This document shows, piece by piece, positions 24,193 to 53,300 of a stretch of 64,000 nt of DNA. Source of the stretch: Klebsormidium nitens (lineage: Eukaryota; Plantae; Klebsormidiophyceae); NCBI GenBank assembly GCA_000708835.1, contig DF237158.1, forward strand, positions 72,999 through 136,998, written 5' to 3'. The position numbers and the translations under genes are program-made. Under the pieces are notes generated by a model that ran no database searches, was not told the origin of the DNA, and saw only the letters and a program-made list of their open reading frames with translations. Each line of letters starts with the position of its first letter. The stretch's first letter is position 1.

Positions 24193-27100
24193 ATGGCGTC
24201 CGTTGATGGAAGCACTTTGAAATCTTGTCTCCGGGCGGCACGTGAAGCAATCAGCAAGCGAGAGTTCAAAGATGCGATCAGAGAGGCACGTGCAGCTTTA
24301 AAGCATGACAAGCGCAGCTATGATGCACTTCTTTACATTGGAAAGGCCGCTTTCTCCTTGGAGGAGTATGCACAGGCTGACGTTGCGTACCGGAAAGCGA
24401 TTGAAGTCAATGCCGCTGGTTTGCCAGCATGGCAGGTATGGTGTCGATGCATGTGCATCTACTTCTCGTGGGTCATCCTTCTATCTTGTCAACTCAGCTT
24501 CTTTGAAAGCCTTCCCCTCGCGTCAAGGTTCCGCAATGTCTACCAGCTTTGCAGCCCAATCTTCTACAGCATCACATGTCTCACGCCCGAGTTGCACTGC
24601 AATATGCATTTGTTTCCTGTCAGCTTGCGTGCTTCATGCGCTCTGCTCCTTCAAATGTAGGCAATCTGTCTTACCACCTCTATGCTTTCTAAGTCTCTGC
24701 ACCACCAGCATCAGATCAGCTGCTTATTTCATCAGCCTTACAGACCCTCCTTTCCCCCCCCTTCTCCTCTGGGTCAGCCTGTGTCTTCCCTTGCTGATGT
24801 GCCAGGGCCTGGCCGAGCTGCACGGAAGCACCGGGGACCATGAGAAGCTGGCGGAGGCGTGCGCCCACCTGGTGGAAGGCTGGGCCGCAGCGGGGCAGGC
24901 AGACAAGGTCAGCCATTTCCGCAGGAAGCTGGCGCAAGCACTGCTGGACCAGGGGAAGAGGGACGAGGCGCGCAGGCTGTGGAGGGAGGTCCTGACAGCT
25001 GCTAAGCAGGTATGGCATTGCACGCAGCCGCTCTCTAATTACTTCTATCGGAAGCATCTCTCCCAAGAGAGCCTACTGGACCTTCTCCCCAATTCTGATC
25101 TCCCTCATCCCGTTCATGTGCCACGGTAAAAGTCTCTACCAGTTGTTCTGAAAAGTGCACGAGTCCAAGAGGCGAGAAGGTTGGAGCCGCAGAGGGCCTT
25201 TGTAATACTGTCAAAGAGGGAAGCCATCATATTTGTCCCCGATACTGTTCAGTCTTGCAGTGGTGGCAACAATTCTGATAAGAGGAGGTGACAACTTCCT
25301 TGCAGGGCACTGAGGAGCGCACTGAGGCGCTCTGCGCCTTAGCTGAGCTTGAGATAGTGGAGCATGCAGAGTGGGTGGAGCGCGAGGTCCAGCAGCGGAG
25401 CAGCCGCCAGAAGAAGCTTGCCAAGCTGGCCGCCAAGTCAGGGCTTGCGGCGGAGGTAGGACCAGTGGACCTGGAAGCGATCAAGAGACAAGTTGAGGCT
25501 GACAGCGCTCCAGGTCTGGACAAGATCCTGGAAGTCATTGTAGGGGAGACAGCCTCGACAGCGCAGTATGCCAAGTACCATGTGTTGAACCTGCAGAGGG
25601 CACTGGCAAGGCTGCTGCAGGCACCGCCAGGTGGGCTGCTACATGACCCAGAGGTCGTCACTTGCTGTTTGCGAAATCCTCTGAGCTCACTGGCCTACTC
25701 CAATCGTAGGCAGGGAGAATTATGTGGAAAAGGTAGTCGGAAGGGCAAACTTATGAGGATGACATGGTCTTCTGATGTGGACCATGTTTGAGTCGCAACA
25801 AGGCGGAAGATGATGACGAAAGCATCTTGCAGATCCACCGGACTGTGAAATATTCGGTTCCTGCTGTTGTTTTCTTTGGTTGTATCGAGTAGACTTGGCC
25901 AATCTTCATTTCTCCACAGCCTACATCGTCTCTGTTTGCTCTGCAGGTAGCTTTGCAGAGCTCGAGAACCTTGTCCTGGCCCGCAGCCTACGCATGATTG
26001 CTGCCGGCACTTCGCTGGCGGAACCATTCCTGGTAGCGCTGGCCCTCTGCCAAGAAGATGCTGTTATGGACCTGCCCGCCTGGAAAGAGTTTGACCCTAA
26101 CCAGACTCGCGAACAGCTAGCCAGGCGCCTGGGGCTCATGTTCGTGCATGCTTTTCCGAACCACGGCCTGGGCTGGATTGCAACGTCGGCAAACCTTTAT
26201 GCCATCCAGCAAAGCAGGTACACATCTGTTCTTCTCAACTCTCCTTCGGTGTCCCAACGGCTCTGGTCTGATATTAGCCTGAGCGAGGTGGACCACTGGG
26301 CTGACTTTTTGACCCGATACGAAGGGGGTCAACAATGGAACAGCTCGCTGTTGCCTGTTGTCAACTTTCCTGATTTGTCTTGCTGATTTCAAGGAAAGTA
26401 TCAGGTCTGCTGGACTTGTATGCTTGAGGTTTTCCCTCAAAATGTTGACTCTCGTTGACGTGTCGTCGACCGCAGCGCTTGGATAAATCGAAGCGAGTTG
26501 CTGTGTGGTTGCAGCCCGTCTCCAGACCTGGATGCCGTCAAAGCGCACTGCCAGCTCGGCCTCAGGCTGGACCCCGACTCGCCCCACGGGTGAGAACCTC
26601 TGTTAACCTCTCTCCCCACGGAGAGAGCGTTCTTGGATGAAACCTTTGCACTTGAAGGAGTAGCCTCTCGAACCCGAATCGTTCAAAGGGCATGAGGTGC
26701 CATCTTAACTGCTTCTTTCCCTCAGTCGTTCTTTTGAACAATGGCCAACAGCGATCGGATCTTCGTTTCCCTTTACGCGACCCTGTCGTCAATGCCCATC
26801 TGTCGTCAATGACTTTCTGCAGGTGGCACGTTCTGGGGACGGTGCAGCTTGTCGAGGCGTCCGCCTCCGGGGCCCTCCAGTGCGTCCAGCGGGGCTTGGA
26901 AGCCGTGGCGAACCTGCGCGAGCGCTACGGGCTGCGCCTACGTCGTGCGGAGCTGCAGCTCCGGCTGCTGGAGAGCGCCGCGCTCGTCTCTGCCGGAAGG
27001 GCGGGCGACGCAGCGGAGCAGCTACAACTTGTAGAGGACGAGTGTGAGGTACAGCTGGAGGGGGCAGACCGGGACGAGGTGCGTCTGGCTGCCATTGAGG

Positions 27101-30100
27101 GGCAGGCACGGGCAGCGATGAGAGCAGCGGCAGAGGGGGCGCAGTTCGATCTGGCCCGGCTGGCGCTAGAGAGATTGCTGGCCGTGCAGCCGGATAACGC
27201 GTGGGCGTATGCACAGCTGGGGGATATCGCGCTGCGGGGCGATGACGCGGGGCCCGGCCTGGAGGAAGCACGCAGGAACTTCGAGAGAGCGGTCGAGCTG
27301 AAGCCCGAGGATGCCTCCTTCCACTTCAGCTTGGGGCAGGTGAGGCAGCTTTTTGGGACGTCTTCTGCTGTCAATTCTTGCCACAGCCAAACGTACTTTG
27401 GAAGGCTTCGAAGCATGAAAGCCGGGCTTACTTGTGAAACAGCAGTACCTCGTGTTTGAGGAAAATCTGTCGCATTGCTTCTGCTTCGAAACTTGTCGGA
27501 CAGCCGGGCCCATTGCGTGAGTGCGCATGGTTCTCATGCTGCGCCTGGAAGCCCGTGTGATCCTCCTCTCCTCCAAGCCTCCCCGTTTGTCCGTGTCAGA
27601 TCTACTGGCGGCTGGGCGGGCCGCTGAAGGAGGACCGCCAGTACGCGCATGCGCATTTCCTGGAGGCTGCGCGCCTCCAACCGGGCCTCGCTGGCGCGTT
27701 CACGTTCCTGGGTCGCTACTACCGCGAGGTACAAGCCGACGATCTGCGTGCGCGCCGCTGCTTCCAGAAGGCCGTGCAGCTGGACCCGGACGACCAGCAC
27801 GCGGGTAGGCCCCCAGCCGGCTGCCCATAGCCTTCCCTTTGAAAACGAAAGTTCTTCAAATAGGTTGTGCCTTCTTCCGCAGGGAGAGCTCTCAAGTACT
27901 TGGATAGGTATCTCGATGCCAAACACTTCTGGTCCTTGCTTGATTGTATCAAACAACATTTTCTCTCTGCCGCCAACGCTTCCGCCGCATGCGTGCCCGC
28001 CTCCGTGCAGGCACTGCTCTGGCCGACATGATGGCCGCCTCGGGCCAGCGCCGTGCGGAGGTGGCCATGTGCCGCGAGGCGTGCCAGCGCAGCCCGCGCG
28101 CGTACTGGGCGTGGCGGCGCGTGGGGTTCCTGGAGGCGCGGACTGGGCGGTGGCAGGAGGCGCTGGTCAATTTGCAGCACGCGCTGCGCGGGGACGCCAA
28201 GGACGGGCCGGCCTGGGAGGCGCTCGCGCTGGCGTACCAGAGGCTGGGCAAGTTCACCGCGGCGCTCAAGGCGTACGGCCAGGCCGAGAAGCTGGCAACA
28301 GCGGAGGGCAGGGTGCCCGTCTTCACGCTGCTGCAGGTGAGGAGGCAGAGAACAAACGGGGCAGAACGGCGCAGGAATCCGAGGCTGCCGAGCTCGTTGA
28401 GGATGCGGATTTTGCTTCCTCCCCTCGTGCAGGTCAACTTCTGTGGTCTCTCCTCTTCTAGATCAGCTTACAAGCTGTTTGAAACTCACAGGGTGCTGTC
28501 TGTTGCTTGCTTCCTGGGGGTGCAAGACGCCAGCCCAGTCTGAAAGTTGACTTCCATTCCATCCCCATCGACTCGCTGACCCGCGGTCCGCCATTTTGGC
28601 TCTGCCTGTGCAGGCTGCCAGCATCCAGCTGAGCCTCGCCAACTTCCGCAAGGCCAGCGACAAGTACGTGGCCGTGCTGCGGCGCGCGCCCACCCACGCG
28701 GCCGCGCTTGCTGGCCTGGCGTCCGCCTTGCTGGGCCAGGCGCGCCACTTCCAGCAGCAGGGCGCCGCGCAAGCTGCAGCGGACCTGCTGGTGGACGCGA
28801 GCAGGGCCGCGCAGCGGGGGGTCACCCTGCACGGGAACAGCCGCCCCCTCTGGAAGCTGCTGGGTGACATCGGCCTGGAGCTGGGCCTCGTGGCGCCCCC
28901 ACAAGAAGGCCACGTGTCCGAGGACGGCACGCCCTCAGCAGGCATGGCTCACGAGTTCCTGGGACGGCTGGAGGCTGCTCGCCGGGTGCGGCTCAGTGCT
29001 TTGCAGAAGAGCGCGCGTGCGTACCGGCACACCATCCACCTGAACCCGGGGGATGCCAGCGGCTGGGCGGACCTGGGCACGTGCCTCAATCACCGGGCGG
29101 ACTTTGCGCACCCAGCCAGCGAGGGAAAGCTGCGGCCGTTGCACTGGGGCTGGGGGACGGCGAAACTAGGAGCGGCGAGTGCTGTTGGAGCGCCGCTGGC
29201 GGACCAGGGGCTGCTGCTCAGGTGAGAAGGCGATGGGCCGCAAGAGGGCAAGTGCTGGAAGAGCACGAGGCGAGGGGAAACTTCTTGGCCTTGTTCAACA
29301 ACTTGCTTCAAAGCTGGTTCGCTGAAGCTATTGAGTCGCAGAGACCAGTACTGTAATGTCGGCGAGGGATGTTTTCCGTTTTGCTACCCGCTTTCCTGTC
29401 TTCGATGCCCGCTGTTTTCGTTTGTGCCACGGCTTTCTGTTTCTCGTCATGCACTCGGCTTCGTCTGCGGCAGCAGCAGCTGGTTGTGCGCCAGCGCATT
29501 AAGGCCCGTTCGCCGTGTCCGTGCAGGACGCTGGCTGAGCGGCTGGTGCTTGGCGGGCTGGCCCTGGACCCGACAGCCGGGGGTGTGTGGGCGACGCTGG
29601 GCGCAGTGGCGCAGGAGCGGGCCCTCCAGCAGCACGCGCTCATCCGGGCACTGCACATCAACCCCAAACTCAGTGCGGCCTGGATCAACCTCGGGCAGGT
29701 TAGTGCGCAATTTTGAGCAGTCGTGCTGCTTCTGGGGGGGCGAGAGTTCTGGCGGCAAGAGGCTAAAAGGCAGACGTTCGTCGATTGAGTACGAGCGTGC
29801 ATTCTGAGAGCGCCAAAACGTGGTCGTCTCTGGATGCAGGAGAGCCTTGGCAACACTTTTGGCCCCTGCATTGCTTCTGGATGTTCGTCAGTTTTGAAAG
29901 CTGTGTCTGGCGAGGAAGTATCTTCTTTCCATCCTCGCTGAGGTCGTCGGCTTTCTCTTTGAAAATTCGACATGCCGCAAGGCAAGGCTGGTCATTGATC
30001 TTCGAGCACAGCACGATATGCATTCTAACGGGGACCACTTACGGCTGGCTATATCTCACTCGACCCGCAGCTGTACCTGGCAGAAGGCGACTTTGCGCTG

Positions 30101-33100
30101 GCCCGCGCCACGTTCGACCAGGCGCGCAGCTGCGACCCCGTGCTGGCGGTCCCCTGGGCCTCCATGGCGTGCATGGAAGCAGCGGAGGCGCGCGACGCCA
30201 AGCAGCGGGAGGAGGCGCGGTCCACCGCGCGCCACGCTGTGCAAATGGGTCCCACCGCCACGGGGCAGCTCGGGTACGCGACGCTCGCGGCGGGGCTGGG
30301 CCAGCTGGGCAGCCCCGAGGTGTACATCGCGCTGAGGCAGGCCACGCTGCAGCTGCCGGCGGTGGCGGCGGTGCACAACCTGCTGGGGCTCGCGTGCGAG
30401 GCGCGGGGGCTGCTGCCGCAGGCGGTGGCCAGCCTGGAGAACGCGCGCGCAGTGGGGGCAGCGCAAGGGGCGGGGAAAGAGGAGGAAGAGGGCGTGGCGT
30501 TCAACCTGGCGCGGGTCCTGGCCAGGGCGGGGCGGCATGCGGAGGCGGTGCAAGAGTACGAGAAGTTGCAGAATGCGGGTGAGGGACGGACAGCTTCGGC
30601 TGCAGCAATACTGCGCTTCATCTTGTGAGCATCCAGACAAAGTGAGAGCCGTTTGGTTTCTCAGAATGAGGCTCAGCATCTCGTCACTTTCTGATGATCG
30701 CTTGCGCACCTGGAAAGGCGCCTCTGCTCCAGCAACGTCGTCAACGTCCGCGAGAAGTATGGTTCGAAGCTTGTGGGCCCGTTGCTGAGAGGTGCGTTGC
30801 TTGGCTTTGCCGCAGGAGCGATGCTCCAGGAGTCGTCTGCGCCTGCATGGCGGCAGTACGGCGTGTCCCTCTGGCGCACCGGCCGTACCGACGCTGCGAC
30901 CGCGGCGGTGCTGCAGGCCCTCCAGCTGGCACCGCCGCCGCTGCCTGACGAATCGCCTCCCAAGGCGCACACCGCAGCGCTATGCGCACTGGCGTGGATC
31001 CAGTACCAGGCAGCAGGGCCGGCCCAGGCGCTGCAGACGCTGCGGGAGAGCGTGCCCGAGTGCTGGCAGGACACGCAGGTGGGCACGCGGCAGGGGACGA
31101 TGCAAGGCGCCTCAAAATGGACGCGACAATGACCTACTGCTGGTACAGTGCAAAAGCCTCCGCAACGAAGAGCGTTTCTGGCTGTCCAACTGGCCTTCAT
31201 CTTGACTGTGCAGCTTGCCTTGCTAAAGGTTACGGTCGACGTCCACGAGCATCGGAGCATGTTTCTACTTTCCCCGCAGGTGGGCATGACGGCCCTGGCC
31301 CTGGCCACGCTGGCCCGCGACAACACGATGATCGCGTTCGCCATCAGCAAGTGCCCCGCCCTCTTTGAACACGGCTCCGCCCCCCGCAGCAACCAACTTC
31401 TCAGCTTAGCGCACAGGTGAGAGACGGCGAGATGTCCCAGGAAGACCCGACTATAGTGGTGGCTCTTGACGAAGAAACGAAGGGACGGTGCCAACTTGCA
31501 AGGACAATTATTAAGGAACTTTAGCCAAGGTCGCAGAATGTCTCTGGTGCATGCTGGGTTGACCGATGCTCTTACGTGAAGTGGTATCGAAGATGTTTGC
31601 AGATGTCTCTGCCGTGCAGAAGTGTGGGATGACAGTAGAGCGAATTAGAAAATATCAACGGCGGCCAAAGTCCTACCCGATCGATGCGTCCCTCGAAGAC
31701 ACGTCCTCTGATCGCTGCGCTTTTCGGAACAGAGTGGGATTCGAAGCTGTGCTGGATTCTTCTATGCAGGTTGCAGAAGAACCCTTCGCGCGCCCTCCTC
31801 CACCTGCGCACGGCTCTCCACTCTTCCCCCGACAGTCTCCGCCTCCGTGCCGCTCTCTCCGAGGCTCTGCGCCTGGACCGTCGCCCCGAGCAGGCCCGCC
31901 AGGTGGTGCAGGGAGCGACGCGCCCAGCGGCGGGCGGGTGGGGAAACTCCGACTCGGTGGAGGAACTAGGGGCGTGTGTGCAGGAGGCTGCCGAGGGCCT
32001 CTTCGCCCTGGGCTGGGCAGCAGAGCGGAGCGAGCAGAACGAACAGTTGTTTCGCGACCTGCAGCGGTGGGTCAAGCTCGATCCGGCGGCCCCCGGTGGC
32101 CGGGCGGTGCTGGCGCTTGCGGCTGCGCTGCGGGCGCAGGGCGGGGAGGGGCCCCAGAGCGGGCGGTGGGAGGCGGTGCACAGGCTCTGCGGGACGGCGC
32201 TGGAGGCGGAGAGGAGAACGACGGAGAGCAACCGTGAGGGAGCCGATGGGGAAACCCGTGTGGCGCTCTTGAGGACGCTGGACGCGGAGGCGTTGTGGCG
32301 TTCGCGGGTGAGAGCGGAGCGCGAGAAGGGCCGGCAGCAAGCACGGCTCCTGCTGGAGGGGGCGCGCGGACAGGAGGAGGAAGGACGCGCGCGCTTGCAC
32401 TTGGCGAGGAACCGGCGGACGGCGGGAGTGGAACTGGCGGGCGCGGTAGAGAGCGGGGGCAGCGTGCAAGAGCACCTCGCGCATGCAGCATCCCAGGTGG
32501 GGGCACACAGGCCGTGCCGCCGATCAGGAAGGTGGTTTGCGTCCGACGTCAGCCCTGCATTTGATACAGTTCATTGCTGCTGGTACAATGAGTCTTTCAG
32601 GGTGGCAGCGTATAATCCTCTCCTCGATTTGAGTGTTCAGTGTTAATTCATGCCTGTCTGAGCGGCATCAGCCTATTCGCAGGGGGCGAGCGGCCGCTAC
32701 GGAGACGCGCTTCAAACGCTCGAAGCTGCAGAACACGTGGCCGTTCTGTCGGGGCCCGAGCAGCGCTGCTGGGCGACGGCCGTGCGCGTGGCGCGCGCTG
32801 ATGTGCTGCTCAAGAGCGGCGACGCCGAGTCTGCGGCAGCCGTAGCGACGGACGCCGTCGAAGAGGAGCCGGACAACCCGCTCCTGCTGCTGCTGCAGGG
32901 TGAGGCATTGCGTACGAGGCGGGGTCGACTGGTGCCCGCGAACCTGGAGCAATCCTGGTATTGCCATGTCGTCGGTGAAATCTAGGTGTCAAACCCCGAG
33001 TAATTTATGCGGAAGTGCCCCGCCAATCGCTGAAGGAAGCTGTCTTTATTCTCTTATCAGGCGCGCTGCTGTCACTGGCGGCGGAGGGTGGTTCCGGCGC

Positions 33101-33673: not shown

Positions 33674-36035
33674 CGCGGGAGCCGCTATGGTGGACCAACT
33701 GGGGGCTGCGGTGGGCGCCAAAGTAAGGCAAACCTCTGACCTCTTGTAAACCCTGGTCAAGCGAAATGTAAATCGACTAGCCTCAATTCGATGTGCCAGT
33801 GTTCTTCCGGTGGTAGGCCTCGGCAGGTCCTTATCGTCCAAGTCCTTAATGCGTAGTCCATGATCCGCTTAAAGACGCAGTCCGGCTAGCTTAAGTTGTG
33901 TTGTGGAACCTTTGCGATCGAAAGGGTCCATTCCATAGGTTTATCACGCCTGCTCTTAGGGGCACTTCAGTAGGTTCCGCTGTTCGCCGGCTGGTCCTGA
34001 CTAAGGCCAATCTGCTGCTGCTTCAACTCCTGCTCGTCAGCAATGACCTGCTTTTGGGTCCACAGGCTTTTTTCCGTCTCTCGCCTTTCACAGATTTTGA
34101 CTTCCGTTTGATGACCCGTTTTCGTCGACCTTTCTGCAGTTTCTGATGGCCGAGCTCTTTGGAGCACGGACAGAGCAGCTTTGTGTTGGAAGGGAGGGTG
34201 GGAACTTACGAGATGAGGGGGGGAAGTCTGCACCTTTGGGGCGGGGAGAACGCAGGCCGTCGATTTTGGATACTTGTTCGAGCGAGATGCTCGAGGAGGT
34301 ACAACGCGCGAAGCGGAAACCCTTAGAGGCGCACAAGATTTCTTAGTTGACCACGGAAACGAGGGCGTCAACATTCAAAGCGATGGCGGCCTTATAATCG
34401 CGTTTGCGGGGTTTGAAAATGTGTCCGAAACGGACACGGCTGATGCGTAAGGGAGAGTCTGCATTTAGTGCGCGAAGGCGTGCCACATGGCAGCTTTGGA
34501 GCCGCCTTGAACCTCAAATGCTTCCTCGTGCCCATAAACGAGGACCGCTCTCTCGAAAATTTGCCAAATGCAACGCACGCGTGCCGACGATAGAGCCGAT
34601 AAGTCCGCCTTTGTGATCTTGTTGTGGGATTGCGAGCATAGCTTAGCACGATGGCCGAGCAGGGACTCATTAACCGAGGGTTCGACGGTCCGGTCAGATA
34701 GAACGCAGGTGGATGCTCAGACATGGACACAACAGTTCCAGACGGTCCCGTCGAAGAAGCATCAGAGAGGAGAAAAAAGGTCTAGTAAGTCAAAACAGAG
34801 CCGCAAGTTAAGATAGCGGAGACAGCAGAGACAGCCACGCACAAGAAAGCGACGGAAGGAAGAAAGTCGAATAGTGCTTGTTTGAAAGACTTCAGTTTGA
34901 TGAATCAACGGGGTGCTTTTGCTGAGTCAGCTCTTCTTGATCAAGGTTTGTCTGTCGAGCAGGCAGCAGATTGTTAATTTCTTCCAACGAGGTTTGTGCA
35001 TTTCGAACCAATGTGACGGTTCGATCAGATGCGTCACTCAAGCTGTCGAAGGATACAAATATACACCCTTAATTCCTTATCATGCTATGCATCCGTATCA
35101 ATGCATGTAGAAATGAACTTGAAAGTGTGAGTATGAGTCGAGTTCGCCATTGAAGGCTTGTCGATCGCTATTTCGATCCGGACGATTGAAAGTTGCATAA
35201 GCTGATGATGCATGCCGATGTCTGTCACTCAGACTGCAGACGCGATAAGTATGCATGCCGTACGTGAAAGGTCAAGTCCGGTCTGTCGCCTATTTCGCTA
35301 TATAAGGCAATCGAAACATCGGAAAATGATGCAAATGTGAACGGGATGAACTTGTAGCCAGTGTTCCTTGTCACGGAAGGTTACTCGGGTCAACTGGCAA
35401 GGTACCAAACTGTTTGAAAACAATTAGCTTCCGCATTGAAATTTCCTCACCATGCTTTCAGACGCTAACTACATTTAAAGCAACGCGACTGCTAACCCTC
35501 TCCATGCTCGTCGACCTTACCGTAGACTGTACCTAGCTCAAAAAGCTCTTGATAGTTGATTGCGTCCCGAGGAACGCGACTAATGATCGAGCCCCTTCCT
35601 GCAACCCACCGGTAAATGGTGGTCGCCAAACCCTCTTGAATAGAGGGATACTATTCTAACATATGCTCGTATACTGGCTTTTAAAGTCTGCGTGAAGCAT
35701 TTCCTCTCGGTACGCTCTGGCCCCACAGCTATTACCAAGAAAATATACCTCTTACCTCTGAGGTTCCAAATTTCTTAATGTCGTCGACTCCTCAGTCACG
35801 CCTCTGAAAGCGACACAGCAAAAGCTCTCGTTGAGAACGAGCAGTCTTCTGTAAGGTACTACGTACTTCGTTCAATTTACCGACGGGTTGATAACTTCTC
35901 TAGACGCTATACTCCGGTATTGTCTTATGTTTTATCAAAGTTTCCTCTACGAGTGATATGAAGGCAAATGAAATCACAGTACCAGTCAATCACCACTGGG
36001 CGTGCCTTGGGGAACGGCTCGCTTGGAGGATTGAA

Positions 36036-39000
36036 CTACCCCATGAAATCTGCAAGCACGTCGATGCGTCCGGCGTCAAGGCTATTCGTGTCAACGAGCA
36101 GAATGAACGAATCGACCTTTCTCTCATCCGACAGTGTTTTGAGAAAGCTATGCCGAATTCAAGACAAAGGCTTGGAAGACATTGTCCCGAGATGCATTTG
36201 GAAACGTTGCTCAATATCAGCATATGCGCAAGCACAGAGAGGGACATAGAAAACCTGTTGGACTCAAAGCTGCACCGAAGGCAGAAGGCAGAGTGGTTGC
36301 GAGAGCTTACGGCATGCGTTGTTGAACCATGCGCACGGCTTATTGCCATTCGTGCAGGCATTCTCATTGGGACAGTTGCAAGCGTTGCCACACCCCCCCT
36401 TGGGGTTGGTCGGCACGGGAGTGGGCGTGGCAACTGCGGGGGGAGACGACTTCGCAAGAGGAGGCGGGCTGGCAATCTGAACAGGGGGCGGGCTGGCAAT
36501 CTGAACCGGGGGCGGGCTCGCAATCTGAACCGGGGGCGGGCTAGAAATCTGAACCGGGGGCGGGCTAGCATTTTGAACAGGGGGCGGGCTAGCAACCTCA
36601 ACAGGGGGCGGGCTAGCGATCTCGGCAGTCGGCGGGCTAGGGATGGCCACAGGCGGCGGGTTGGCGTTCTCCACAGGTGGCGGGTTAGCGTTAACCACCG
36701 GCGGAGGTTGGCTGTCCGCAGCAGCGGGAGGGGGGTTCACTGAAGCAGGTGGCGGGTTCGCTGCGATGGGGGGGGGGTTAGCGGCAGGGGGAGGGAGGGC
36801 AGAGGACGAGGGCGTGAGAGTCATGCCCAGGATGACCGGGTCGTGGTCGGAGCAGCGGTACATCGAGGTGGGGCTGGCCAGGCCGGTGGGGCTCTGCAGG
36901 AAAAGAGGGTTCGAATTGGAGCCCGAAATATAGATATGAGGAGAACCGAGTTCGTACCACCAGGCACAAGCAGAAGCAATTTCGTCGTTCAGTAATCCTA
37001 TCTGATAGTCTGCTAGCGGACTAACATTCAAATTCAACGCCTGCTCAAGGATCTACAGCATCAAAGAGAATTGCATGCGTCTTCAAAGTCGGCGTCTTCA
37101 AAACCGGCATTGATTGCACAGATTGAAGCACGCAATTTCTCATGGTCATGTCCCTTGTCGGCCATTCCCGCTGGCAGAAAAAAAGTTGCCAAGTACGAAG
37201 GCTGCGAAAAAAACACTTCAAGCGAGACGTTCAAAATCTCACGGCCTCCTTTGCTACTCAGGGAAGGGTAAAGAAAGCTCTAATCGCTAACGCCTTTATC
37301 GCTCACGTCGTAGTGCAGCACGATCGGCTCATCCGCGTTGATGTGGAACTCGGCGACGTCCTGGACCTGCGGCGCGAGAGCGGACGACGCGAGCGCGTGG
37401 TCGAGGTAGCCGCTCTCGCCACCGAAGACGTACGAGTAGGCCAATGGGCCGATCTTGGCGGCGATCATGTTCACGAAACCGCCCGCCTCGAAGGTCTTGA
37501 TGGGGTCCTCCTTGGCGTACGCGTTCATGTCTCCCAGCAGCAGGAAGTCTGGGTCGTTACTGCCCGTGGGATCGCTGGCGAGCCACCTCACGATGGCGGC
37601 GGCGGCTCTCTGGCGCGTCAGGTTGCAGTTGCCCTGCACATGCAAAACCGTTGCAAAAGTGAGAGACATATACCCGTAGTCTGAGTACGAATATACCTTT
37701 CCCATCCACATATTTGACTTTGTAACCTGTTGGCCAGAGCGACCCTACGCGAGAAGCTCGTCAGCCTTTTGATGCTGAGTAGCGAGCTCCTATCAACCCC
37801 ACCGTAACTCCACGGAAAGACAAAGGGAACCATCAGATTCACCGGCTCTACAGCTCTTGAAAGAGCACAGGAGCTGCCTCTCGACTTCCAGGTATTTTGC
37901 GACAACACTGAATTAGAATCCTTATTGATGCCGAAAGATCGGACGCCTTCATTTCGGACACCTCGACTGTTTTACCCGGAGCACGCGTCAGGCAGTGCGT
38001 TACCTGTCCGTCCTTTTGGTCCGCGTCGCCGGAGCACGCGCTGCCCTTAGATTTGAGATGATTCGCAACCACGGTGATCTTGCCCCCCTGGTTGTCCGCA
38101 AACGTCTGGGCCACGGACGGCCGCGTGTTGTCGGACGGGAAGGTCGGGTCCACGTTCTTGGTGATGGCACGTGCCGCTCCCACGGGAGTCACGGCGGAAA
38201 CGCGGTACATCATACCCACCGTGATCGCATCGCCGCCGACGCACTGCCTGGCGCACTGCAGACGTAGAAAAGAGGTTATATTCAAGGGAGGGCTGTCTCT
38301 GCAAAATGATTGGCATCTGACCAAAGGTGAAAGACACCTGCCGGTGTCAGTAGTACGCAGTCAACGTCTGCCAAGTCGTGTCACTTGGCGGGCAATTTGA
38401 CCGCAATAGTTTGAAAGAATCTATTTATTAGGCGTCGAATCCCGTATGTGATGAGTTGATGGTTTGCTGCTGCTTGAAGGAAGCGCCGAAGTGATTTTAA
38501 ACGGCAAGGTTTGAACATAAAACTACAATTCCCACGGTGGCATTTCTTAGAGGCGTGTAATCAGTCCAAAACCTTTCGCAGCATGTAAATAAAATGGCAG
38601 AGCTCACGTTGGGATCCGTGCTGATGATCGAGGGGCTGCCCCCGTCCGGCTGGTTAACCCTGATGAAGGCATACGTTCCAGCCCCCACCGCGTTGTTGAC
38701 CGCATTGGTCAGAGTGGCGATAGCACTGCTCGGGCCGAAGCCGTTGTTCTGGAGCTCTTGGAACGCGTAGATGTCCCCGTTCAATGCGGTGATGGCCAAC
38801 ACTTCTTTGGCGAGTTGCGTGTCGAATTGCTGTAAAGAGGACAACAGCAACTCGTTTCAGCTGCAGTTTGTGTGCTTCCTTCAGGGAGCTGAGATGGCGA
38901 GTGATGGTGGACATCAAAGTCAGTCGACGGAAAGCACAGGTACGGAGTCGACATTCGATTTTGGTAACAAATGAATTCTGGCACAAATGAGATCTGCTGA

Positions 39001-42000
39001 CTTTGTGAGACGTCGATTCAGCTTTTCAGATTGTTCACAAACAAACTTTTGCTTTTGAGTATTGAGAAGCTCTGCTCGATCATGAAAACTCAGCTGGTAT
39101 CTGAGAGGACTCAAGCTCTTCAATCTGCGAACGGATGAGTTAGCGAGGTTGCAGAAGGAACGGCTTCAAAAAGGATGCCAGACGTTGAGCATATGATGTA
39201 AGCCACATTACCTGCTGCGTCTTGGCACCGCGGCAGTCGGAGGAGCTGCACCCGTTGGCCTGCAGCTGCGTGAAGAAGTTCTCCAGGTTCATGCCCACCA
39301 CTTTGAGGCTGCCCGCGACGGCAGGCCCGGCGGTCGGGCGCGGGTTGGTGCTGGGATCAAAGGTGAGCGCCGCAGAGGACGGGTTGCCAATCGGCTCCAC
39401 CAAGTACCCGAAAGAGCTGCCGTAGGACAGGTCGCCATTCAGGGGGCCGGCCAGGGTGTAGCCAACACGGATAGTGTTGCTGTCCGACAGGCCGGGGTAC
39501 GGGTACGGGGGCTTCAGCGGCGGGCTGGACCGCGAAGTCAAGCTCGACCCGTCGTCCACGAGAATGGCCTGCGCGTCGTTTGAGGCCGCAACGGCGTTGG
39601 CGGGAGCACCTGCAGGGAATGCCCAAGCACAGTTTATATTCGTTCTGGTCGCCCCCGTGACAGAAGAAATTGGATGCTTTTCGGGAGGTCGTCAACAGCA
39701 GCAACTCCAACCGAAAGAAAAAAAGAGATGCATCCGTGATGCATTCGTTCATTCTGTAACCCCACAATCAAGCCTATGAAAGAATCTCAAGTTCCTCGAA
39801 ACACTGATGCGAGATGCGGCTCACAAAGAGGTCTGGTTGAACGAGCTGACCCGACCAGAGTGCATGGTAAGGAACGGCGTGACCAATCGACAACTTCGCA
39901 GGTCCAAGTACAAGACTGCAACTCGGAAAATCTGTTCAAAGAGTCACTCACCGGGATCGGCCACCTGCGTGGGCACATAGCGCCTGCCATTCACGGACAG
40001 TTCGATCTCCCCGTAGAAGTCGTCGTTGTAGTTATCCGTCACAGTGAGCGTCTGCAAAGCACGAGATCCTGTCAGGGCCGTTTATGAACGGATACTGTCT
40101 TCCTTTCCAGCACCTTGACAAGAGCAGTGCACGGGCACCGGACTCTTGCCTTGCCCAAAATCTGGTCAGAAATTGATACGGGATGCTGCCAACGAAGACC
40201 CTTCTCATTCGTTGCTCTGTCTAAGCGTCCGTCAGCTGCTGACGAGCTTAAGCGCTGTATCTCCAAATTAGATCCCTTGGTTCAGAATCATTCAGAATCA
40301 TTCCCGATCTTAGGTTGTTGTTCGAGTTCTCGGCTGTTACTTTCACAGACAGAGACGTACTTAGAGGAAGTCCAAGAGATGAAAGGATTGATGCTTATGT
40401 CCAACTGCATCCAAACTCCCAACCTTTCCTCAACCGCTCACTCTTACTTAGTACCCCTAGCAAACAAAGATAAAAGACGAGACTCAGAAGATGCAACCTG
40501 CGAGAAAGAGCGGCAGCGCGACACGGGCGGCACATACCTGGGGGAAGTTGACCTGCATGCTCAGGTACTGGCGGAGGTCTGTCGGCAGCGTGACTGGCGA
40601 GATGGTCGGGGGAGGATTCCCCGAGCTGCAGATGGTGAGTGCGGTCACGGCGTTCATCTCGGGCAGGCCGTTGTAGTTCACGATCGTGCCGGACACCTGG
40701 ATGTAGTCCCCGGGGGCAGTGGCCGGGAAGGTGGCACGGCTCGTGCCGACGAAGTAGACGAAGAGGCCGTTGGACGTGCCCGCGGTGATAGGGTCGGCTT
40801 GGGCCTGCAAGCACAAGAAACAGACACATTAAGTCAGGCATGCGGATTCGTTTTCCTTGCGGACAAAAGCGCCGACAAATACGAGCAGCCGGTTCTTGTT
40901 AAAGGTGAGTTCAAAGGACTGCTCTGAGCCTGCCAGAACCGCTTCAGAACGAAGCGGCAGCCGAAGGACGACCATATGACTGCCGGTGCAGCTCCAAAAA
41001 CGGTCTTCAAAAGACCATTCAAACCAAGGGACGGCGAAAGAGTATCCAGCAGATTTGACAACTGAATACTTGTCTCGTAGCGGTCCATCTGAATTTAACG
41101 CCCTCTTTATTGAGAGGGATCTTTCAATATGCGTAACCAATCCCTACCAGACCCCATCCAAAGCGGCGAGTAATGTCCAACTACCCAAACACAAGAGTAT
41201 TTCTTTGAACGGCACTCACGTCGGGCGTCTGAATGAAGATCCCGTTGAGGCGGTTAGCTTCGTCGAACTCCCCGGTGACAATCCCCGAGGTAACCACCTG
41301 CTTGTCAGCGATGGCCTGGGCCTGACCGTTCCCGTTGATGGCATAGATGGGCGTCTCTCCGGCAGAGCCGCAAGTGCCCGTGGCTCCTCCAGCCGGGGGA
41401 GGGCTGGAGACGGTCGTGTCAACAGGGGGAGGGTTGCTCGTGCTAAGGGCCGGGGGGGGGCTGGACACCGTGGAACCAACAGGAGTGGGGGGGGACGTGT
41501 TACCTCCTGTTGGGGCAGTTCCGCGATAGCCTGCAAACAAGAGAGTAACTGATGAGTATTTTTTCTCTTGACTACTCACTTAGCCACTCAATGAAGGCCC
41601 CACCACCACGTTATCAATCATGAACAGAAACTGTGCTTGAGGCAATTAAAGTGAGGGGTCGAAACGAGAATGACGAGAATCAGTGCACCCAATAGGATTC
41701 TTCTCGCACATGCTTTTGTGACCAACATGTAACCCGCAGATTGCTCCTGTTAAATGGGCATTGCATGGAACACCAAAACTCAGACTACACACATCAAGAA
41801 GATGAACGGTGGTATCACCTGTTGATGTAAGGAGGCCATCCACCACAAGCTGGCTCGGGAGGTTCCCTGCGCCAATGATCCGCGGGCCTTCAGAGGAGGG
41901 GACGGCCTGGCCTGCGTACGCTGGGCCAAACGAGTTGGCGGCAGGGCTGGACCACGTGGTGGAGCCCGTGCGCTGGACGGAATATCCCACGGGGGTGCTG

Positions 42001-44509
42001 CTCGTCTCGCGTGGGCTCACGGGCGTGCTGCCATGGACAAACGCAGAGAAACATTGCTAGGTGCAAAGTAGACATCATCCCTCAGAAATGAGTTCAGCGA
42101 ACCTTGTTACGAAACTACAGAAACCAGGAAAAACCCATACGAATGTGAAAACGACGAGCAAGTGTAGGATCACCAAGTCCTGGATCAAATTGTGGGGCCG
42201 TCTGTTGGAGCGACGGGGGAACAAAAACGAGCTGCAATGTCGCTTCTAATTGAAAAGATACGCGGTGTTGCCGACCAAAAGGATACCGAATGCGAAGCAG
42301 AAGTTGATCGAAGAGCCACTCACGATGTTTCGCCAGAGGCAGGGCCGGTGTTGGCGGATGCGGTCACGGTGAAGGTGTTTGACGTGCTCGACCACGAGAT
42401 GAAGTCCAGCAGCTGACTCGCGGGGTCGGAGAGGGCCATCCCCGCCCCGCTGTTGGTCAGCCCGTCCACGGGGAAGACGACGACGATGGTGCCGGACTGC
42501 AAGATCGAGTCGAAAACAGATGTCAATTTGCTGAGACCAGATGTCGAGGAGGATACAAAAAATTGTCTCGAAGGTCTGGCACTCGGCTCTAAGAACAAAG
42601 ACCAGAATCTCGAAAGTACTTGAGTACAAGAAAGGCATTCACAACAGCTGACCCAGCCCGGGCATCTCACCGTGGTTGAGCCGGACGACCCATCTCCTCG
42701 CAGGATGGAGCCAGCCGGGAAAGTGAGGGTCGGCCCGCTGGGGAGGGGGCACACACTGGTGCTGCACAGCCCTCCCGCCCCCGCGTAGCGCGTCAGCTTG
42801 TAGCCAGTCACGTCAGTGCCTACAGGTCCGAAGATCTCAACCGCCTCGGCTGCAACAAAGAAACAAGCACGGTGAGTGCATGCACGATAAACTATGCTGA
42901 CTGCCAACCAAGCCAAGCTGCTGGCTTCTACGCAAGAAAAAGCCCATGCAACGCTCCCGAGTCTCAGGCGTGCATCATTCCAGCGACTTTGATTTGGCAA
43001 CGAGGGTTTCATTTGTCAAATCGTGGCCTCAAAACAGTGCCTTCCACAATCTCTCAACCCTCTTACACAGGTAACGGTACTCAGGACAATAGTTACAAGT
43101 GGGACACACAAGCAAGTTCCTGCCCTCCTCAACTCCATGCTGATGGCCCTAAGTCAAGCGGTGGGGCTGCAAAAATGGTCCTACACAGGCACTTCTCAGC
43201 CCTCCCAGAAAAGCAACGGACATCCATCGACTCTAGCTGTCAAGTGGATACCTCACCAACATCCGTGCCGTTATTATCCCAGTGAATCTCATCGAAAAAG
43301 ACAGCTGTCACTCCAGTCTGCGCAAGTGATCGGCGCTCTGGGAAAATTCTGTCGAGACAAGGACAGCAGGTGAGTTAGGCGGCCTTTTAGAGTGCAAGTC
43401 AGGCCTTGGATATCGCTGTCCTGAAGACATGTATGATTGACATTCCTGATTACTTGCTCAGGCATGAGTTGATGATCACCAAGGTTTTTCCCGGATCCCT
43501 TACTAGTTGAGCGCTTTTGGGGAGCTGCATGGGAAAGCTGGTGCATGAAAGTCCTGACCCCGTTCTCATTGCAGTGCTTGGAGCTCAGAAGGAAGAGCCT
43601 TCCTTGGGAGCAGCCTGAGGAATACTCCCATCAACAAAGTAACAACTCCTCTATCATAGTTCCTTACAGGAAAGGAACTACAAGCAAAAATAGATGAACT
43701 CTTTGGACTGATATACTGAAAGGCTGATAATCGCTGATAAGTTGCAGAAGTGTGATAAACCACTCGTCTCTCAGAATGGTGATGAGCTCACAGCCTGCAA
43801 CAGCAGCGACTTGCTACAAGCGAAGAATCCTATGTCTCTTAGAGGCATAGCGGGCAGCACACCAAATTGCTTGACAAGAGCCTGTTGTAGAGAATCTCAG
43901 CTTTTGAGCCTTTTACAAAGTTTCATAAAATTCTAGTATGATATAAGTTTTTGGCAACCAGGTAGTTTTGTTGCAAGTGTGAGATAGTGCACCCAGATTA
44001 CCACGAGTTGACTCTTTTGGCCAAACAGTACATGGAAGCACAAGTTGACTTTTATGGCCAAAAAGTAGCCAACTTACTCTTTGGTCAAACGATTCGTAAG
44101 CACAGCAACGATCACCCTGACAGCCAATTTGATCTCCCTGACTCTAAACATTCTTCGAGTGCCTTTGTTCAGCTTTTAGCTGCTGTGATAGTGTCAACTC
44201 GTTTAGGCCAGCACTCTATCCTTGAACATGGCTACACTAATCAAAGCACAGCTTGTTCTACGGTGAAGTCACTGGAGTCGTAAGACCACAACACTTACAA
44301 GTGACAACAATCTGACCCCAATGTGGGGCATCTGTCCTTTTGCAGCCAATCTAGAGTAAACAAAGGGGTCAATTGAAGGAACCAGTCTGCGTCCAACGTT
44401 GAAGAAATCAAGTTGAGGCGTCTTACCTTGCATCAGCGCCGGGAAAAAGCGCAACAGCCAACAGCGCCATCAGCATGACGAGGGCAGGGAGCCGCCCAGG
44501 CGCCGCCAT
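36036..44509 (-). CDS. Secreted ExeM/NucH-family extracellular nuclease: signal peptide, lamin-tail-like domain, Pro-rich linker, OB-fold, EEP nuclease, Ser-Pro3 stalk, Cys-rich tip; ~1070-1080 aa
   Basis: In-phase GT-AG exons 44509-44427, 43348-43257, 42849-42671, 42496-42324, 42027-41819, 41530-41220, 40804-40538, 40051-39952, 39609-39212, 38829-38608, 38255-38004, 37633-37307, then 36893-36311 plus 36049-36036 (or unspliced read-through to a stop at 36264). Family motifs: VFFDEIHWDNNGTDVAEAVEIFGPVGTD, TPIYAING, VVTSGIVTG..NGIFIQTPD, ILVDDGS, GMNLENFF, DIYAFQELQNN, GGDAITVG, RPSVAQTF, ANHLKSKGS, DGQGNCNLTR, LLLGDMNAYAKEDP, YSYVFGGESGYLDH, HINADEP, YRCSDHDP. Confidence 0.9.
36436..36800 (-). 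repeat. Coding 24-bp (8-aa) tandem repeat encoding [Q/E][I/V/N]ASPPPV, ~11 degenerate units, preceded by 7-aa A(A/S)NPPP units
   Basis: Plus strand shows repeated GGGGGCGGGCT(A/G)GCAATCTGAAC(A/C). Translation: VNANPPPV ENANPPPV AIPSPPTA EIASPPPV EVASPPPV QNASPPPV QISSPPPV QIASPPPV QIASPPPV QIASPPPL. Confidence 0.9.
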
Positions 44510-44935
44510 CTTTGTGGTGATCGAATTCGAGCTTTGAGCTGAACCGAAATGTCTGCAGACAATGGCCCAGACGCAGCTAAACAGATGCAGCCCTCCTTGT
44601 GTGGATGTTGCTGAAGTATGAGCTTGCTCAAGAGACTGCCTCCTGAAAGCAGCCGACACCCCTGATCGGGCCCTGATCAACCTTGCATAAGATTGTTGTA
44701 CGAAATTGGAACAGATCTCAATGCAAAGTACCTACCACCGGTGGTCAATTGGAGCAAGGCTCGTTAGGGAGTAAAAAAGTGGGAACAGAGAGCGACAGAC
44801 TGGCAGTGCTCTGCGGACTGGCTGAAGTGGATCACATCGACACGAAGTTCTGAATAAGCTGGAAATCAAAGCTGCCACATCGGCAGCAGTGCTTCAAGCT
44901 CGATCAGATACACTGGAATCCTTTTATTTGTGCTG

Positions 44936-44943
44936 GCATATAC
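44936..44943. promoter_or_regulatory. Candidate P1BS (GNATATNC) phosphate-starvation element upstream of the nuclease gene
   Basis: GCATATAC lies 427 bp upstream of the nuclease ATG. This is one 6-informative-base match; another chance match (GTATATCC) occurs near 7812. Confidence 0.25.
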
Positions 44944-45548
44944 CCGCTACAACAAGCTGTGCACACTGCAGACTCCAACTGGCAACAACTTGCTAAGATT
45001 CGATGCCAGCCGGGCTGAGACAAAAGCGCACTGGAGCCAGTAGGCTAGCCGCTAGGCATGGGTACCGTATACTGCAACAGAGTGTACCTATGTTGAACAG
45101 ACTGTGCAGTCACCAGTGTGCCCCGGGGGCAGTCCGCAATCATTGATTTGCATGAGGGCAGTTAAAGATGCTTCGGTAAGCGGCAGGAGGTCCGAGGAAT
45201 TATTGACGCTCTTGCCACAATTTTCGGAAATAGCTAGGTGTTATTATTAATTAAAGTTCAAACTCGAACAACAAAATAAAATAGGAGCTCACGTGAACCT
45301 GCTTAACCCAACTCTTATTTGCCGGTCGCACCAAAATACCTACTGACCCTATTAACTCCTTTGTACTAACCCCACCCGTCCTAAAGCTATAACCTGAGCT
45401 TATTTAAGTACCTACCTCGGAAAATCAGTACCAAAATCTGTCAATCTGAAGATCAATCTGCAACTGTTCAATAAAGAGCATCTTTGCGGCACCGGATCGG
45501 ATGCAATGATTACCGTGCCCGAAGGGCCATCATGCTGTCATGATGCGA

Positions 45549-50300: not shown

Positions 50301-53300
50301 GGGCACGCTCACCTTGGCGGATGCTGCAGGTGCTATGGCATTAAGTGCCCTTTCAAAGAGCACCCGGACGTTGGTATCGTCGTTCTGATGCTGCAGGAAG
50401 TCGATGTACCTGCCAATACACATACACTCGTCAACTGGTCACACGGACGAAGTTCGCCCACGATGAAGTCCATGCACGGGGAAAGGATTAGCACGTGACC
50501 AGATTACAGGACTAGCAACAGCAGTCTGACAATTGAGCAAATGGAGCACGTGGAGGGCTGCCCGTAGCGGCCTAAAGAGCACTTTGCAACGAAACTGCTG
50601 GGATTCGTGTTTATGAAATAAAAGGCTATGCAAAATGGGGTGTCTGTCTATGTAAAATGGGGTGTCTTTCTGTTTTCCGTAGCAATTTGAGTGGTGGAAA
50701 GTTCAGATTTGCGATTTTTTCGAGTAAAAGGCTATGCAAAACGTGGTGTCTATCTATGCAAAACGGGGGAACGGGAGGCCGCCCGGTAGTGGCGTGCAGG
50801 TGCTCACTGCAGGACGTATTCCGGTTCGTGGAGGTACTTCTTGAGGCCGTACTCGAAGATGTTCCTGGCGGTCTGCATGGCAAGCGCGCGCACAGGTCAG
50901 CCGCCAAGCGGGGGCGCAACCATGAGCAGGCAAGCCCAGGATTGCGCCAGTGGATTGCCCCAAGAACGGCAACTCCTTGCAAAACAGCGTGCGCTGGACG
51001 GATGGCGCTGACTGGCCGGGTGGGGCGTGAAATGGCAAGCGGCACACGAGTAGCGGGCATGCGGTGCGTACTTTGGGGTCCTTGTTGGCGGCCAGCTCCA
51101 GCTTGGCGGAGGCGACGAAGACGTGGTGGGTGCACGCTGGCGACTTGGTGGCCGTCAGAAACACCTTGCGCGCGGCGGCCATGCCCTCCGTCCGCTGCAC
51201 GAACCGCATCAGCTGCACAGGAATGAAAGGCCCCGTAGGGCAAGCGCCTTTAGCCTCTTCCGTCGAATAGAGAGGGAGAACAGAAGTCGTCACACCGGGA
51301 TGCGCTCCGGGAGGATCCTGCACATCACTCTTCTGGAACTTTTCTCCTACGGAAATAATTGCAATCTCCTCCCGTTGAGACTTGAAGCGACTGCAATAAC
51401 AGAAGTCATAAGTTGGAGCAAAAGAGCTGCCTTTCTTTGCCACACCTGGATGTGCCCGAGCGCAGAGGCGGTCTCCTCCTTGTCTAGGAGGGAGCGGTAG
51501 AGTGCCTTGGCGGCGGGGCCGTTGCCGCGCAGCTCCTCCAGCTCAGCAAATGCGTAGTGCAGGGGCACGCTGGCAGGCAGGGCCCGCAGCGCGCGCTCGT
51601 ACACGCGAGCGGCCGCCTCGGGGGAGTCGTGCTCCGCGGTCCACGCTGCGTACTCGAACCAGGGGTCCGCGTAGTGGTACAAGTAGAGCAGGCACTGCAG
51701 GGCGGCGGAAAAGGAGGGGGTGGGGCAGCAGCAGCGAGAATGAGAACAAGAGTGGCATAACAAATGAGGCGCCGCTTCCGGATATTGTTTGGCAAGTATA
51801 GCGTGAAGGAGGGCGGCTCAGTCGCCTGAAGGACAAGATAAGCCCGCGTGGGCAGAAAAGATTGAGGTCTTTGTAGTGAGAGCGGTAAGCGAAGAGGGTA
51901 CCAGCAGCATACCTGTTCGTGGGCAAAAGTCACCCGCTTTGCCAAGGTCGTTGGGTTCAGCCGTTGCGGATTGGCCCTGTAATGGGATGGCAGGGACAAG
52001 GTGAGAGATCGTCTCCGATAATCCTTGTTTTCCTTTCGCACAACATGAATGGCAAGTCTGGAGCCCGCAAAGTCTCACGAGATCATCAAACAAAGCGCTG
52101 GGGATCGGCTCCCGCACGCTGTCCTCGGCATCCCTCCGCACCTTTCAAACGCGAGCAGCTGCTTCCAGGCCGCCAGCTGCTGGGCTTCCCGAGGCATGCC
52201 TCGCGGGGGCACGGCCAGGGCGGGGCGGGCTAGGCCGTCCGTCAGCGGCTTTCGCTCGCGCAGGGCGGCCTTGGCAGCGGCGTGCCGTGGCTGGAACTCG
52301 GCCAGCGTGACCTTGGCCTGTGCAAACAGCGGGGCGGTCAGGGCGGGGCTCTGCTATGAGCAACATGCTGCCACACGGACGGGCTGTGGGCTGCAAGACC
52401 AGGAGATGCGATGCAAAGGGTAGACGGGCACAAGTATCACTTGTAGGTGCACCTTTGTCAAAACCGACATAGGTAGATTCAACACGAATGGAGGTCGAGT
52501 CTAAGCAAGAGAGTCGGTGGTTATTTTGAAAAAAAAGGCACGCCTCAACACAGGTTCTAGAAGCGAGCTGCCACTACAAAAAGCTTGATTGTCTCACGCT
52601 TTGTTTGTTGGTCTCGTTCTCAAACGCCTCGTAATCACGCCAGAGCCCCTCCACCCCGTGCATGGGAATGACAACCGCTGCCTGGTAGACCGGACGCAGC
52701 AGCCCCGCAGTACGTGTCTCGTCCGAAGGCAGCGCCCCCGCCGTCTTCTTCACAAACGCGATGTACTGCTGCCACAAGGGTGCAGCTGACACGTCCTGCC
52801 CTGTACACGAGGAACAGGTGCAGGTAAAGCGGGGAGTGTCACATGTTCAACGCTCAGCTGCTTGTAGATGTCATCACATACAACAGCGCAGTTGTGCTGC
52901 TGGCCACTTGGCCGAGATTAACTTGCCGCGCGTTGAGACAAGCGGTGCAGGCCACGGCTTCATTGAAAGTCTCTGAACACTGTTAGGGCTGGTATTTGAA
53001 AGACTTGTTGTCATGGCTGCGTCGCCTGGCCCGGTACAAGAAGCTCCCCTCGCAATCAGACCTACGCCTGCTTCTCACCCGATGTCCGGCCGCTTCGGCT
53101 CACCGCCTTGCAGGGCCGCGAACCTCAACGGGTGGACCTTCGGCTGTGGCTTGCTCACCGATATGCTGGAGGGAGAAGTCATAGGCCTTGCGGATGTCCT
53201 CAATGCCGGGCCCCCCCCGGTCCTCGTTGGTGAGCGTGATGTAGCGCAGGTAAGAGCGCCAGAGGTCCAGGTCGCGCAGCAGCGGCAGGCAGCGGCTGAA

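Follow-up and report, generated by a model that had tools for sequence, protein, structure and literature searches.

An intron-rich ExeM/NucH-type nuclease gene of plausibly bacterial origin in the alga Klebsormidium nitens

In soils and biofilms, large amounts of phosphorus and nitrogen are stored as extracellular DNA, which also glues bacterial biofilms together. To our knowledge, the ExeM/NucH/Xds/EddB enzymes, which make use of this DNA, have so far been studied only in bacteria. The locus described here raises the question whether a gene of this type belongs to an alga and, if so, where it came from and what it may do. It lies in a stretch of 64,000 nucleotides of Klebsormidium nitens (GenBank assembly GCA_000708835.1, contig DF237158.1, positions 72,999 to 136,998; referred to as the window), in which a first-pass annotation made from the sequence alone had proposed a bacterial-type ExeM/NucH extracellular nuclease domesticated as an algal gene. 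It adds a new eukaryotic form to this well-known bacterial nuclease family. In our interpretation it is probably a nuclear gene of the alga for a secreted ExeM/NucH member of bacterial origin, which is held in the wall and degrades extracellular DNA; within this interpretation we infer which way the gene moved, that the enzyme is secreted, bound to the wall and active, and what it does for the alga.

Gene structure and nuclease core

The gene is located on the minus strand between positions 44509 and 36264 and consists of 13 exons and 12 introns, all of the GT-AG type, as read from three-frame translation and manual inspection of splice sites (Table 1). The spliced coding sequence of 3243 nt encodes a protein of 1080 amino acids in a single unbroken frame. 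The introns are 174–1078 nt long, contain polypyrimidine tracts and have a GC content of 0.44–0.51 compared to 0.65 for the coding sequence (0.79 at third codon positions). The first-pass annotation, which gave 13–14 exons, 12–13 canonical introns and about 1070 amino acids, was essentially right; of the span it assigned (36036–44509) the start is retained, whereas the coding sequence ends at 36264 and not at 36036. Several exon borders are supported by two relatives of the gene that are described below, an orthologue on metagenome contig L001 and the DNA of a related species (organism B). The acceptor of exon 11 at 38255 is backed by both (CAVQC versus CARQC in the comparison with L001), and exon 5 has an odd C-terminal extension which is kept in L001 and a border which is backed by organism B. 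Among the candidate acceptors of exon 13, the one at 36893 (cctcttttcctgcag) has the best polypyrimidine tract. The exon was started at this position because conservation in organism B ends there (joint 36902/37301), the L001 orthologue agrees, and the alignment to bacterial proteins is gapless across the junction. Starts at 37052 or 37040 (proteins of 1133 or 1129 amino acids) were rejected, as they add about 50 residues that neither the bacterial proteins nor L001 contain and that lie outside the stretch conserved in organism B.

The domains of the predicted protein are ordered as a putative signal peptide, a divergent lamin-tail-like (LTD-like) domain, a Pro-rich linker, an OB region and EEP domain which form the ExeM/NucH core, SPPPVQIA repeats and a six-Cys tail. 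The NCBIfam model NF033681 (ExeM_NucH_DNase) matched exons 7, 9, 10, 11, 12, and 13 collinearly over model positions 21–545 of 546, and the per-exon scores, as a simple sum over the six exons, add up to about 371 bits (cut-off 300). A local hidden Markov model (HMM) of 582 positions was built from 109 bacterial family cores. It matched the spliced protein with 611 bits in one domain (HMM positions 6–581, residues 304–899), slightly below the 622–925 bits which the 109 training sequences themselves scored. All columns that are invariant in the bacterial relatives (109/109) are kept in both the window protein and L001, and correspond to N579, N582, E629, H744, K746, D797, N799, Y801, D840, D887, H888, and D889. 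The Pfam domain Exo_endo_phos was detected in exon 12 (26.1 bits, cut-off 24.5). The position of the predicted OB (YhcR/YcgR-like) region in front of the EEP domain follows from the NF033681 match of exon 7 and from the start of the local profile match. Judged from its sequence, the gene encodes an ExeM/NucH-type nuclease with intact catalytic residues. All motifs named in the first-pass annotation are present in the order given, with their key residues among the invariant ones, and the predicted OB fold and EEP domain are likewise supported by the match of exon 7 and the collinear EEP exons.

The algal protein is not an equivalog of ExeM, as the model NF033680 (exonuc_ExeM-GG) reached 38–59 bits per exon (cut-off 1300) and no GlyGly-CTERM tail was found at the C-terminus. 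ExeM of Shewanella oneidensis MR-1 has the order of signal peptide, LTD, OB (YhcR/YcgR-like) and EEP domains that is predicted for the algal protein (PMC6085458), but is 871 amino acids long, membrane-associated and equipped with a GlyGly-CTERM anchor. This predicted LTD, OB, EEP architecture is also that of Xds of Vibrio cholerae and EddB of Pseudomonas aeruginosa, and partial EddB sequences were found among the matches of exon 12. The catalytic residues D787 and H837 of Xds (PMC6746945) are the same kind of D and H as those in the conserved EEP motifs of the alga, a comparison by type and not residue to residue. The structures 9sf8 and 9sf9 (PDB; 562 amino acids, EEP domain-containing) are related in OB and EEP domains but distant, and were matched not to the spliced algal protein but to one of its bacterial OB+EEP relatives (P0041, residues 30–533, E-value 3e-16, 62 bits). 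They were the only solved chains found to match P0041 and may serve as templates when the algal enzyme is modelled.

Eukaryotic setting and expression

The gene is genuinely nuclear and eukaryotic, as shown by its spliceosomal introns, by the eukaryotic genes around it and by an orthologue that shares its intron positions, and on these grounds the proposal of an intron-rich algal gene is confirmed. The neighbours in the window are PEX6-like, CAF1/PARN-like (with an open exon of 537 amino acids) and Suf/CstF77-like genes, together with TPR-repeat pieces in a GC-rich block (0.59–0.65; Table 1). A family and an architecture that are typically bacterial would fit bacterial contamination or a chimeric assembly. 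This explanation is, however, refuted by the intron structure, in which the frame is broken up by twelve GT-AG introns that have polypyrimidine tracts. The eukaryotic genes on both sides, the same exon-intron structure in organism B and in L001, where a split ribosomal protein gene lies beside it, and a best bacterial identity of just 45% also speak against it, and we give it practically no weight.

L001 is a 58.6-kb JGI metagenome contig that is clearly eukaryotic, with gene calls that are short and fragmented and with a split gene for ribosomal protein L13. Exons 4–13 of its orthologue break at the same sites as those of the window gene, which gives nine shared intron positions (introns 4–12); exons 1–3 were not found in the 1.25 kb of upstream sequence that the contig holds. 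The two proteins are 73% identical over 549 columns, and between 55 and 84% identical per exon. In the gapless catalytic exons, the ratio of nonsynonymous to synonymous substitution rates (dN/dS) is 0.12 at a dS of about 1.2. Because of this low ratio, both copies are considered to be under purifying selection.

Further comparisons were made between 6,000 nt of the window and sequencing runs, comprising DNA of organism B (run X5) and three putative RNA runs. Organism B contains one or two versions of the gene that are about 90% alike, with alignable exons and replaced introns. The alignment breaks within a few bases of the borders of exons 7–13 and near those of exons 5 and 6. The density of differences rises directly after the stop codon: among the best-supported differences listed, 17 substitutions and 2 indels fall in the stretch 3' of the stop codon (36133–36263) versus 3 substitutions in 36284–36396. 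Two contig versions were present over several exons in 36100–42099, for instance with depths of 153 and 85 at 39118–39619; these could be alleles, paralogues or strains. The 3' part of intron 7 (39968–40263) is alignable in organism B, unlike most intron sequence, and may be a slowly evolving stretch or a regulatory or alternative element.

No contig of the window copy was found in the three putative RNA runs, two of which gave no match at all, and the check for spliced transcripts that had been suggested for this gene gave nothing in these small contig sets, from which assemblies drop rare transcripts. The third, run X8, which is of the same species as the window, contained a contig of 1324 nt which matches 36831–36888 and 37316–37358 at less than 90% identity with 14 other letters in between. 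This contig joins the regions of exons 12 and 13 and most likely stems from a transcribed paralogue. The possibility arises that the paralogue is the expressed member and that the window locus is unexpressed or becoming a pseudogene, as both the missing contigs and the paralogue transcript would fit. We consider a silent or decaying copy unlikely: the frame of 1080 codons is intact with all catalytic residues kept, organism B retains the exons while its introns have diverged, the dN/dS to L001 is low, and the runs are few.

Terminal regions of the protein

The first 27 residues resemble a signal peptide by inspection, with R6, a hydrophobic run of 16 residues and the sequence A-D-A followed by R28. 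The hydrophobic core (residues 8–23) has a mean Kyte-Doolittle value of 2.38. Export through this putative N-terminal signal peptide is part of our interpretation; the bacterial family members have a secretion signal. Residues ~40–217, encoded by exons 2–5, align to the N-terminal domains of bacterial family members with 33–40% identity (E-values 1e-16 to 1e-25). All eight bacterial N-terminal domains of this kind that were compared (8/8) match the Pfam LTD domain at 20.7–33.8 bits, below the cut-off of 34.3, and the algal N-terminal exon pieces alone gave no Pfam LTD match. The region is thus probably a divergent lamin-tail-like domain, by transitive support through its bacterial homologues. 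For the lamin-tail-like domain of the first-pass annotation this means that a homologous N-terminal domain is indeed present, and that its link to LTD is indirect and sub-threshold. Some bacterial proteins, for example P0048 (query residues 31–872) and P0059 (33–958), give collinear alignments that run from the LTD-like region across the nuclease core; these two pass NF033681 with 601 and 651 bits, respectively.

At the other end, downstream of SDHDP, the protein contains about ten repeat units of the type SPPPV(Q/E)xA, followed by a tail of 47 residues with six Cys. The SPPP-repeat region and the conserved six-Cys tail are features that were absent from the first reading of the locus. A Pfam scan at E<=0.1 gave no extensin match for the repeats; for the six-Cys tail there was no Pfam match and no usable lead in the ESM Atlas. 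At the equivalent position L001 has a different Pro/Thr-rich repeat, after which the same Cys motif follows. In bacterial relatives the place of these modules is taken by accessory or sorting modules (Big_5, PKD, RTX, T9SS or GlyGly-CTERM).

Origin, possible role and further features

The relatives of the gene are overwhelmingly bacterial. With exon 12 as the query, an exhaustive phmmer search gave 4031 representative proteins at E<=0.001, with up to 73% identity. Over the whole core (residues 299–900), the best bacterial proteins are 40–45% identical and collinear. Two mixed profile searches, in which algal exon rows were added to a bacterial scaffold, returned 7899 and 7988 proteins at E<=1e-20, with no eukaryote among the 120 matches listed. 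The named relatives are all bacterial and belong to Fibrella/Fibrivirga, Chloroflexota (Anaerolineae, Roseiflexaceae, Limnocylindrales), Actinomycetota, Acidobacteriota, Polyangiaceae, and Desulfobacteraceae; among the matches listed, the only eukaryotic ones are close kin of the window gene. A search of the ESM Atlas with exon 12 found bacterial EEP clusters only, and scans of JGI metagenome contigs with alignments of the algal exons 9 and 10 found no relatives. Four short matches of high identity (P0158, P0160, P0163, and P0179) were considered as eukaryotic exons and rejected, since their contigs (L002–L005) have bacterial neighbours and contain contiguous genes broken by frameshifts. In these ENA/JGI assemblies, bacterial ExeM/NucH genes are split into 2–4 adjacent short calls on the same strand that resemble exon-sized fragments, probably as a result of frameshift errors in long-read assemblies. 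The bacterial members of NF033681, found in metagenome-assembled genomes of Chloroflexota, Actinomycetota, Acidobacteriota, and Myxococcota, share with the algal protein the LTD-like domain in front of the core, collinear OB and EEP domains over ~600 residues and the invariant residues; they differ in their bacterial host and in the lack of introns, of which the algal gene has twelve.

In two unrooted maximum-likelihood trees, the window protein and L001 form one clade with a support of 100 on a stem of 1.1 substitutions per site. The second tree places this eukaryotic pair on one side of a split within the bacterial sequences that has 99% support. An old transfer from a bacterium to an alga followed by intron gain is the best reading of these data, plausible though unproven, because a huge bacterial family stands against one narrow eukaryotic lineage, the full bacterial domain order is retained, and nine intron positions are common to two diverged algae. 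With regard to the horizontal transfer proposed in the first-pass annotation and the phylogeny suggested as a check, the bacterial nature of the other relatives seen, a core identity of at most 45% and the position on one side of a well-supported bacterial split agree with the proposal. In the unrooted trees, the algal pair has a long stem and no supported donor.

These last points would also fit ancient vertical inheritance, according to which early eukaryotes or Archaeplastida already possessed the family, which was then lost almost everywhere, without any transfer into this lineage. The introns shared with a relative at such a high dS (nine visible positions) and the poor sampling of eukaryotic proteomes by the searches can be cited in favor of it. 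The thousands of bacterial clusters from many phyla, the restriction of the eukaryotic matches listed to close kin, the entire bacterial multi-domain arrangement and the supported split in the second tree argue against it, so that we see vertical inheritance as improbable.

Transfer from a bacterium remains our preferred explanation. An ancestor of the algal lineage would have acquired a bacterial gene with the arrangement of LTD-like, OB and EEP domains already in place. This gene would subsequently have gained the 12 spliceosomal introns and a host-like codon composition, as well as a eukaryotic signal peptide, Pro-rich spacers of the hydroxyproline-glycoprotein type and the small Cys-rich C-terminal module, and would have been duplicated at least once. 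No report of an algal or streptophyte nuclease of the ExeM/NucH type, or of its transfer, was found in the literature. A comparable case is PAL in Klebsormidiales (Klebsormidium/Interfilum), a different enzyme, which groups with bacterial sequences, is absent from other algae (PMC10849092) and likewise represents a lineage-specific bacterial acquisition.

Several points weigh against the interpretation as a whole, in addition to the missing transcript contig. The searches barely reached annotated eukaryotic proteomes and the window's own protein appeared in no list, so that the absence from other eukaryotes is weakly supported. Neither tree contains a supported bacterial sister of the algal pair, and an unrooted tree is compatible with a root on the eukaryotic stem and does not give the direction of transfer. 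The LTD assignment depends on the sub-threshold matches of bacterial homologues, and the signal peptide and wall anchoring were judged by eye. Finally, ExeM was found to be membrane-associated and not free in the medium, and the cutting mode differs within the family, with exonuclease activity in Xds and endonuclease activity in ExeM, so that neither predicts the mode of the algal enzyme.

The proposed mode of action is as follows. The nuclease would enter the secretory pathway, its SPPP repeat would form a glycosylated rod, and the Cys-rich tail, the LTD-like domain or both would anchor the enzyme within the cell wall or at its surface. The OB region would bind nucleic acid and the EEP domain would cut phosphodiester bonds, presumably by a two-metal (Ca2+/Mg2+) mechanism as for ExeM and Xds. 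ExeM requires Ca2+ and Mg2+/Mn2+ and depends on its OB and EEP domains, but can do without its LTD (PMC6085458). By analogy, the OB and EEP domains may form the active unit of the algal enzyme, with a dispensable or accessory LTD-like domain. Degradation of extracellular DNA would most plausibly release phosphorus and nitrogen. Xds, a surface-associated enzyme whose expression PhoB induces when phosphate is low (PMC6746945), may serve as a model for such nutrient scavenging, which by analogy appears to be the most economical role, with control of biofilms or a barrier against foreign DNA as alternatives.

A wall-tethered nuclease could act on the extracellular DNA matrix of biofilms or on foreign DNA instead of serving mainly in nutrient scavenging. 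Both ExeM and Xds shape biofilms through degradation of extracellular DNA (PMC6085458, PMC6746945), the putative extensin-like rod and the Cys tail suggest surface retention, and a metal-dependent DNA-degrading activity of unknown genetic basis has been described in lysates of green microalgae that are hard to transform (preprint 10.64898/2026.09.23.753703). This alternative is based on analogy, and the preprint concerns other species and intracellular lysates; we regard it as a minority option. With similar reserve we suggest that a bacterial nuclease for extracellular DNA might have been turned into a duplicated, cell-wall-tethered surface enzyme, with a catalytic head, an extensin-like rod and a six-Cys anchor, which would control the surface microbiome or foreign DNA besides scavenging phosphorus. 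In that case, a close algal relative of land plants would have taken an "anti-biofilm" tool from bacteria.

The gene would show that a photosynthetic eukaryote near the land-plant lineage is able to use the same tool for extracellular DNA as bacteria. It would also provide a clean example of how a transferred bacterial gene is "eukaryotised" by introns, a signal peptide and glycoprotein spacers, and it points to a candidate gene family behind the metal-dependent degradation of DNA that makes some green microalgae difficult to transform (preprint 10.64898/2026.09.23.753703). Its weight is moderate, as genes taken up from bacteria are already well known from streptophyte algae, with PAL in Klebsormidiales as an example (PMC10849092); the predicted nuclease is a tidy case and not a revolutionary one.

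Table 1. Features of the nuclease gene and neighbouring genes in the window.
Feature	Position	Strand	Content and support
Exon 1	44427..44509	-	ATG at 44509 is the first in frame; donor GTAAGA; predicted signal peptide
Exon 2	43257..43348	-	Start of LTD-like domain, FFDEIHWDNNGTD motif; phase-consistent GT-AG to exons 1 and 3; within stretch alignable to bacterial N-terminal domains
Exon 3	42671..42849	-	LTD-like domain; splice sites and bacterial N-terminal alignment
Exon 4	42324..42496	-	LTD-like domain; orthologous L001 exon at 1252-1473, 55% identical
Exon 5	41819..42027	-	End of LTD-like domain and conserved segment; only available phase-1 donor
Exon 6	41220..41530	-	Pro-rich linker and start of predicted OB (YhcR/YcgR-like) region; local profile match from residue 304
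Exon 7	40538..40804	-	Predicted OB region; NF033681 positions 21-110, E 4e-10; borders agree with organism B
Exon 8	39952..40051	-	OB-to-EEP connector; 78% identical to L001 exon
Exon 9	39212..39609	-	EEP start, GMNLEN (N579, N582); NF033681 163-269
Exon 10	38608..38829	-	EEP, FQEL (E629); NF033681 267-330; 84% identical to L001
Exon 11	38004..38255	-	EEP, NHLKS (H744, K746); NF033681 330-416, E 1e-20
Exon 12	37307..37633	-	EEP, GDMNAY and YLDHA (D797, N799, D840); NF033681 407-522, E 4e-42
Exon 13	36264..36893	-	EEP end SDHDP (D887, H888, D889), Pro-rich repeats, Cys-rich tail; NF033681 528-545
Tandem repeat	36455..36704	-	24-nt unit, ~10 copies (Tandem Repeats Finder); encodes SPPPVQIA-type extensin-like units
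Six-Cys module	36267..36410	-	GGCGNxCNCPNENxCT...CAW...C; conserved in L001 (~11860-11960, + strand)
Stop codon	36264-36266	-	End of exon 13
PEX6-like	3035-4309	-	
CAF1/PARN-like	21259-22872	+	
TPR-repeat pieces	24305-32646	+	
Suf/CstF77-like	50754-51443	-	

An Rfam search of 35500–45500 gave no match. Two open reading frames on the plus strand, 35958–36743 (261 amino acids) and 40115–40927 (270 amino acids), overlap the Pro-rich repeat and exon 7, respectively, in antisense orientation. With their repetitive translation of the RGRAGNLN type, they are by-products of the GC-rich coding strand and not genes.

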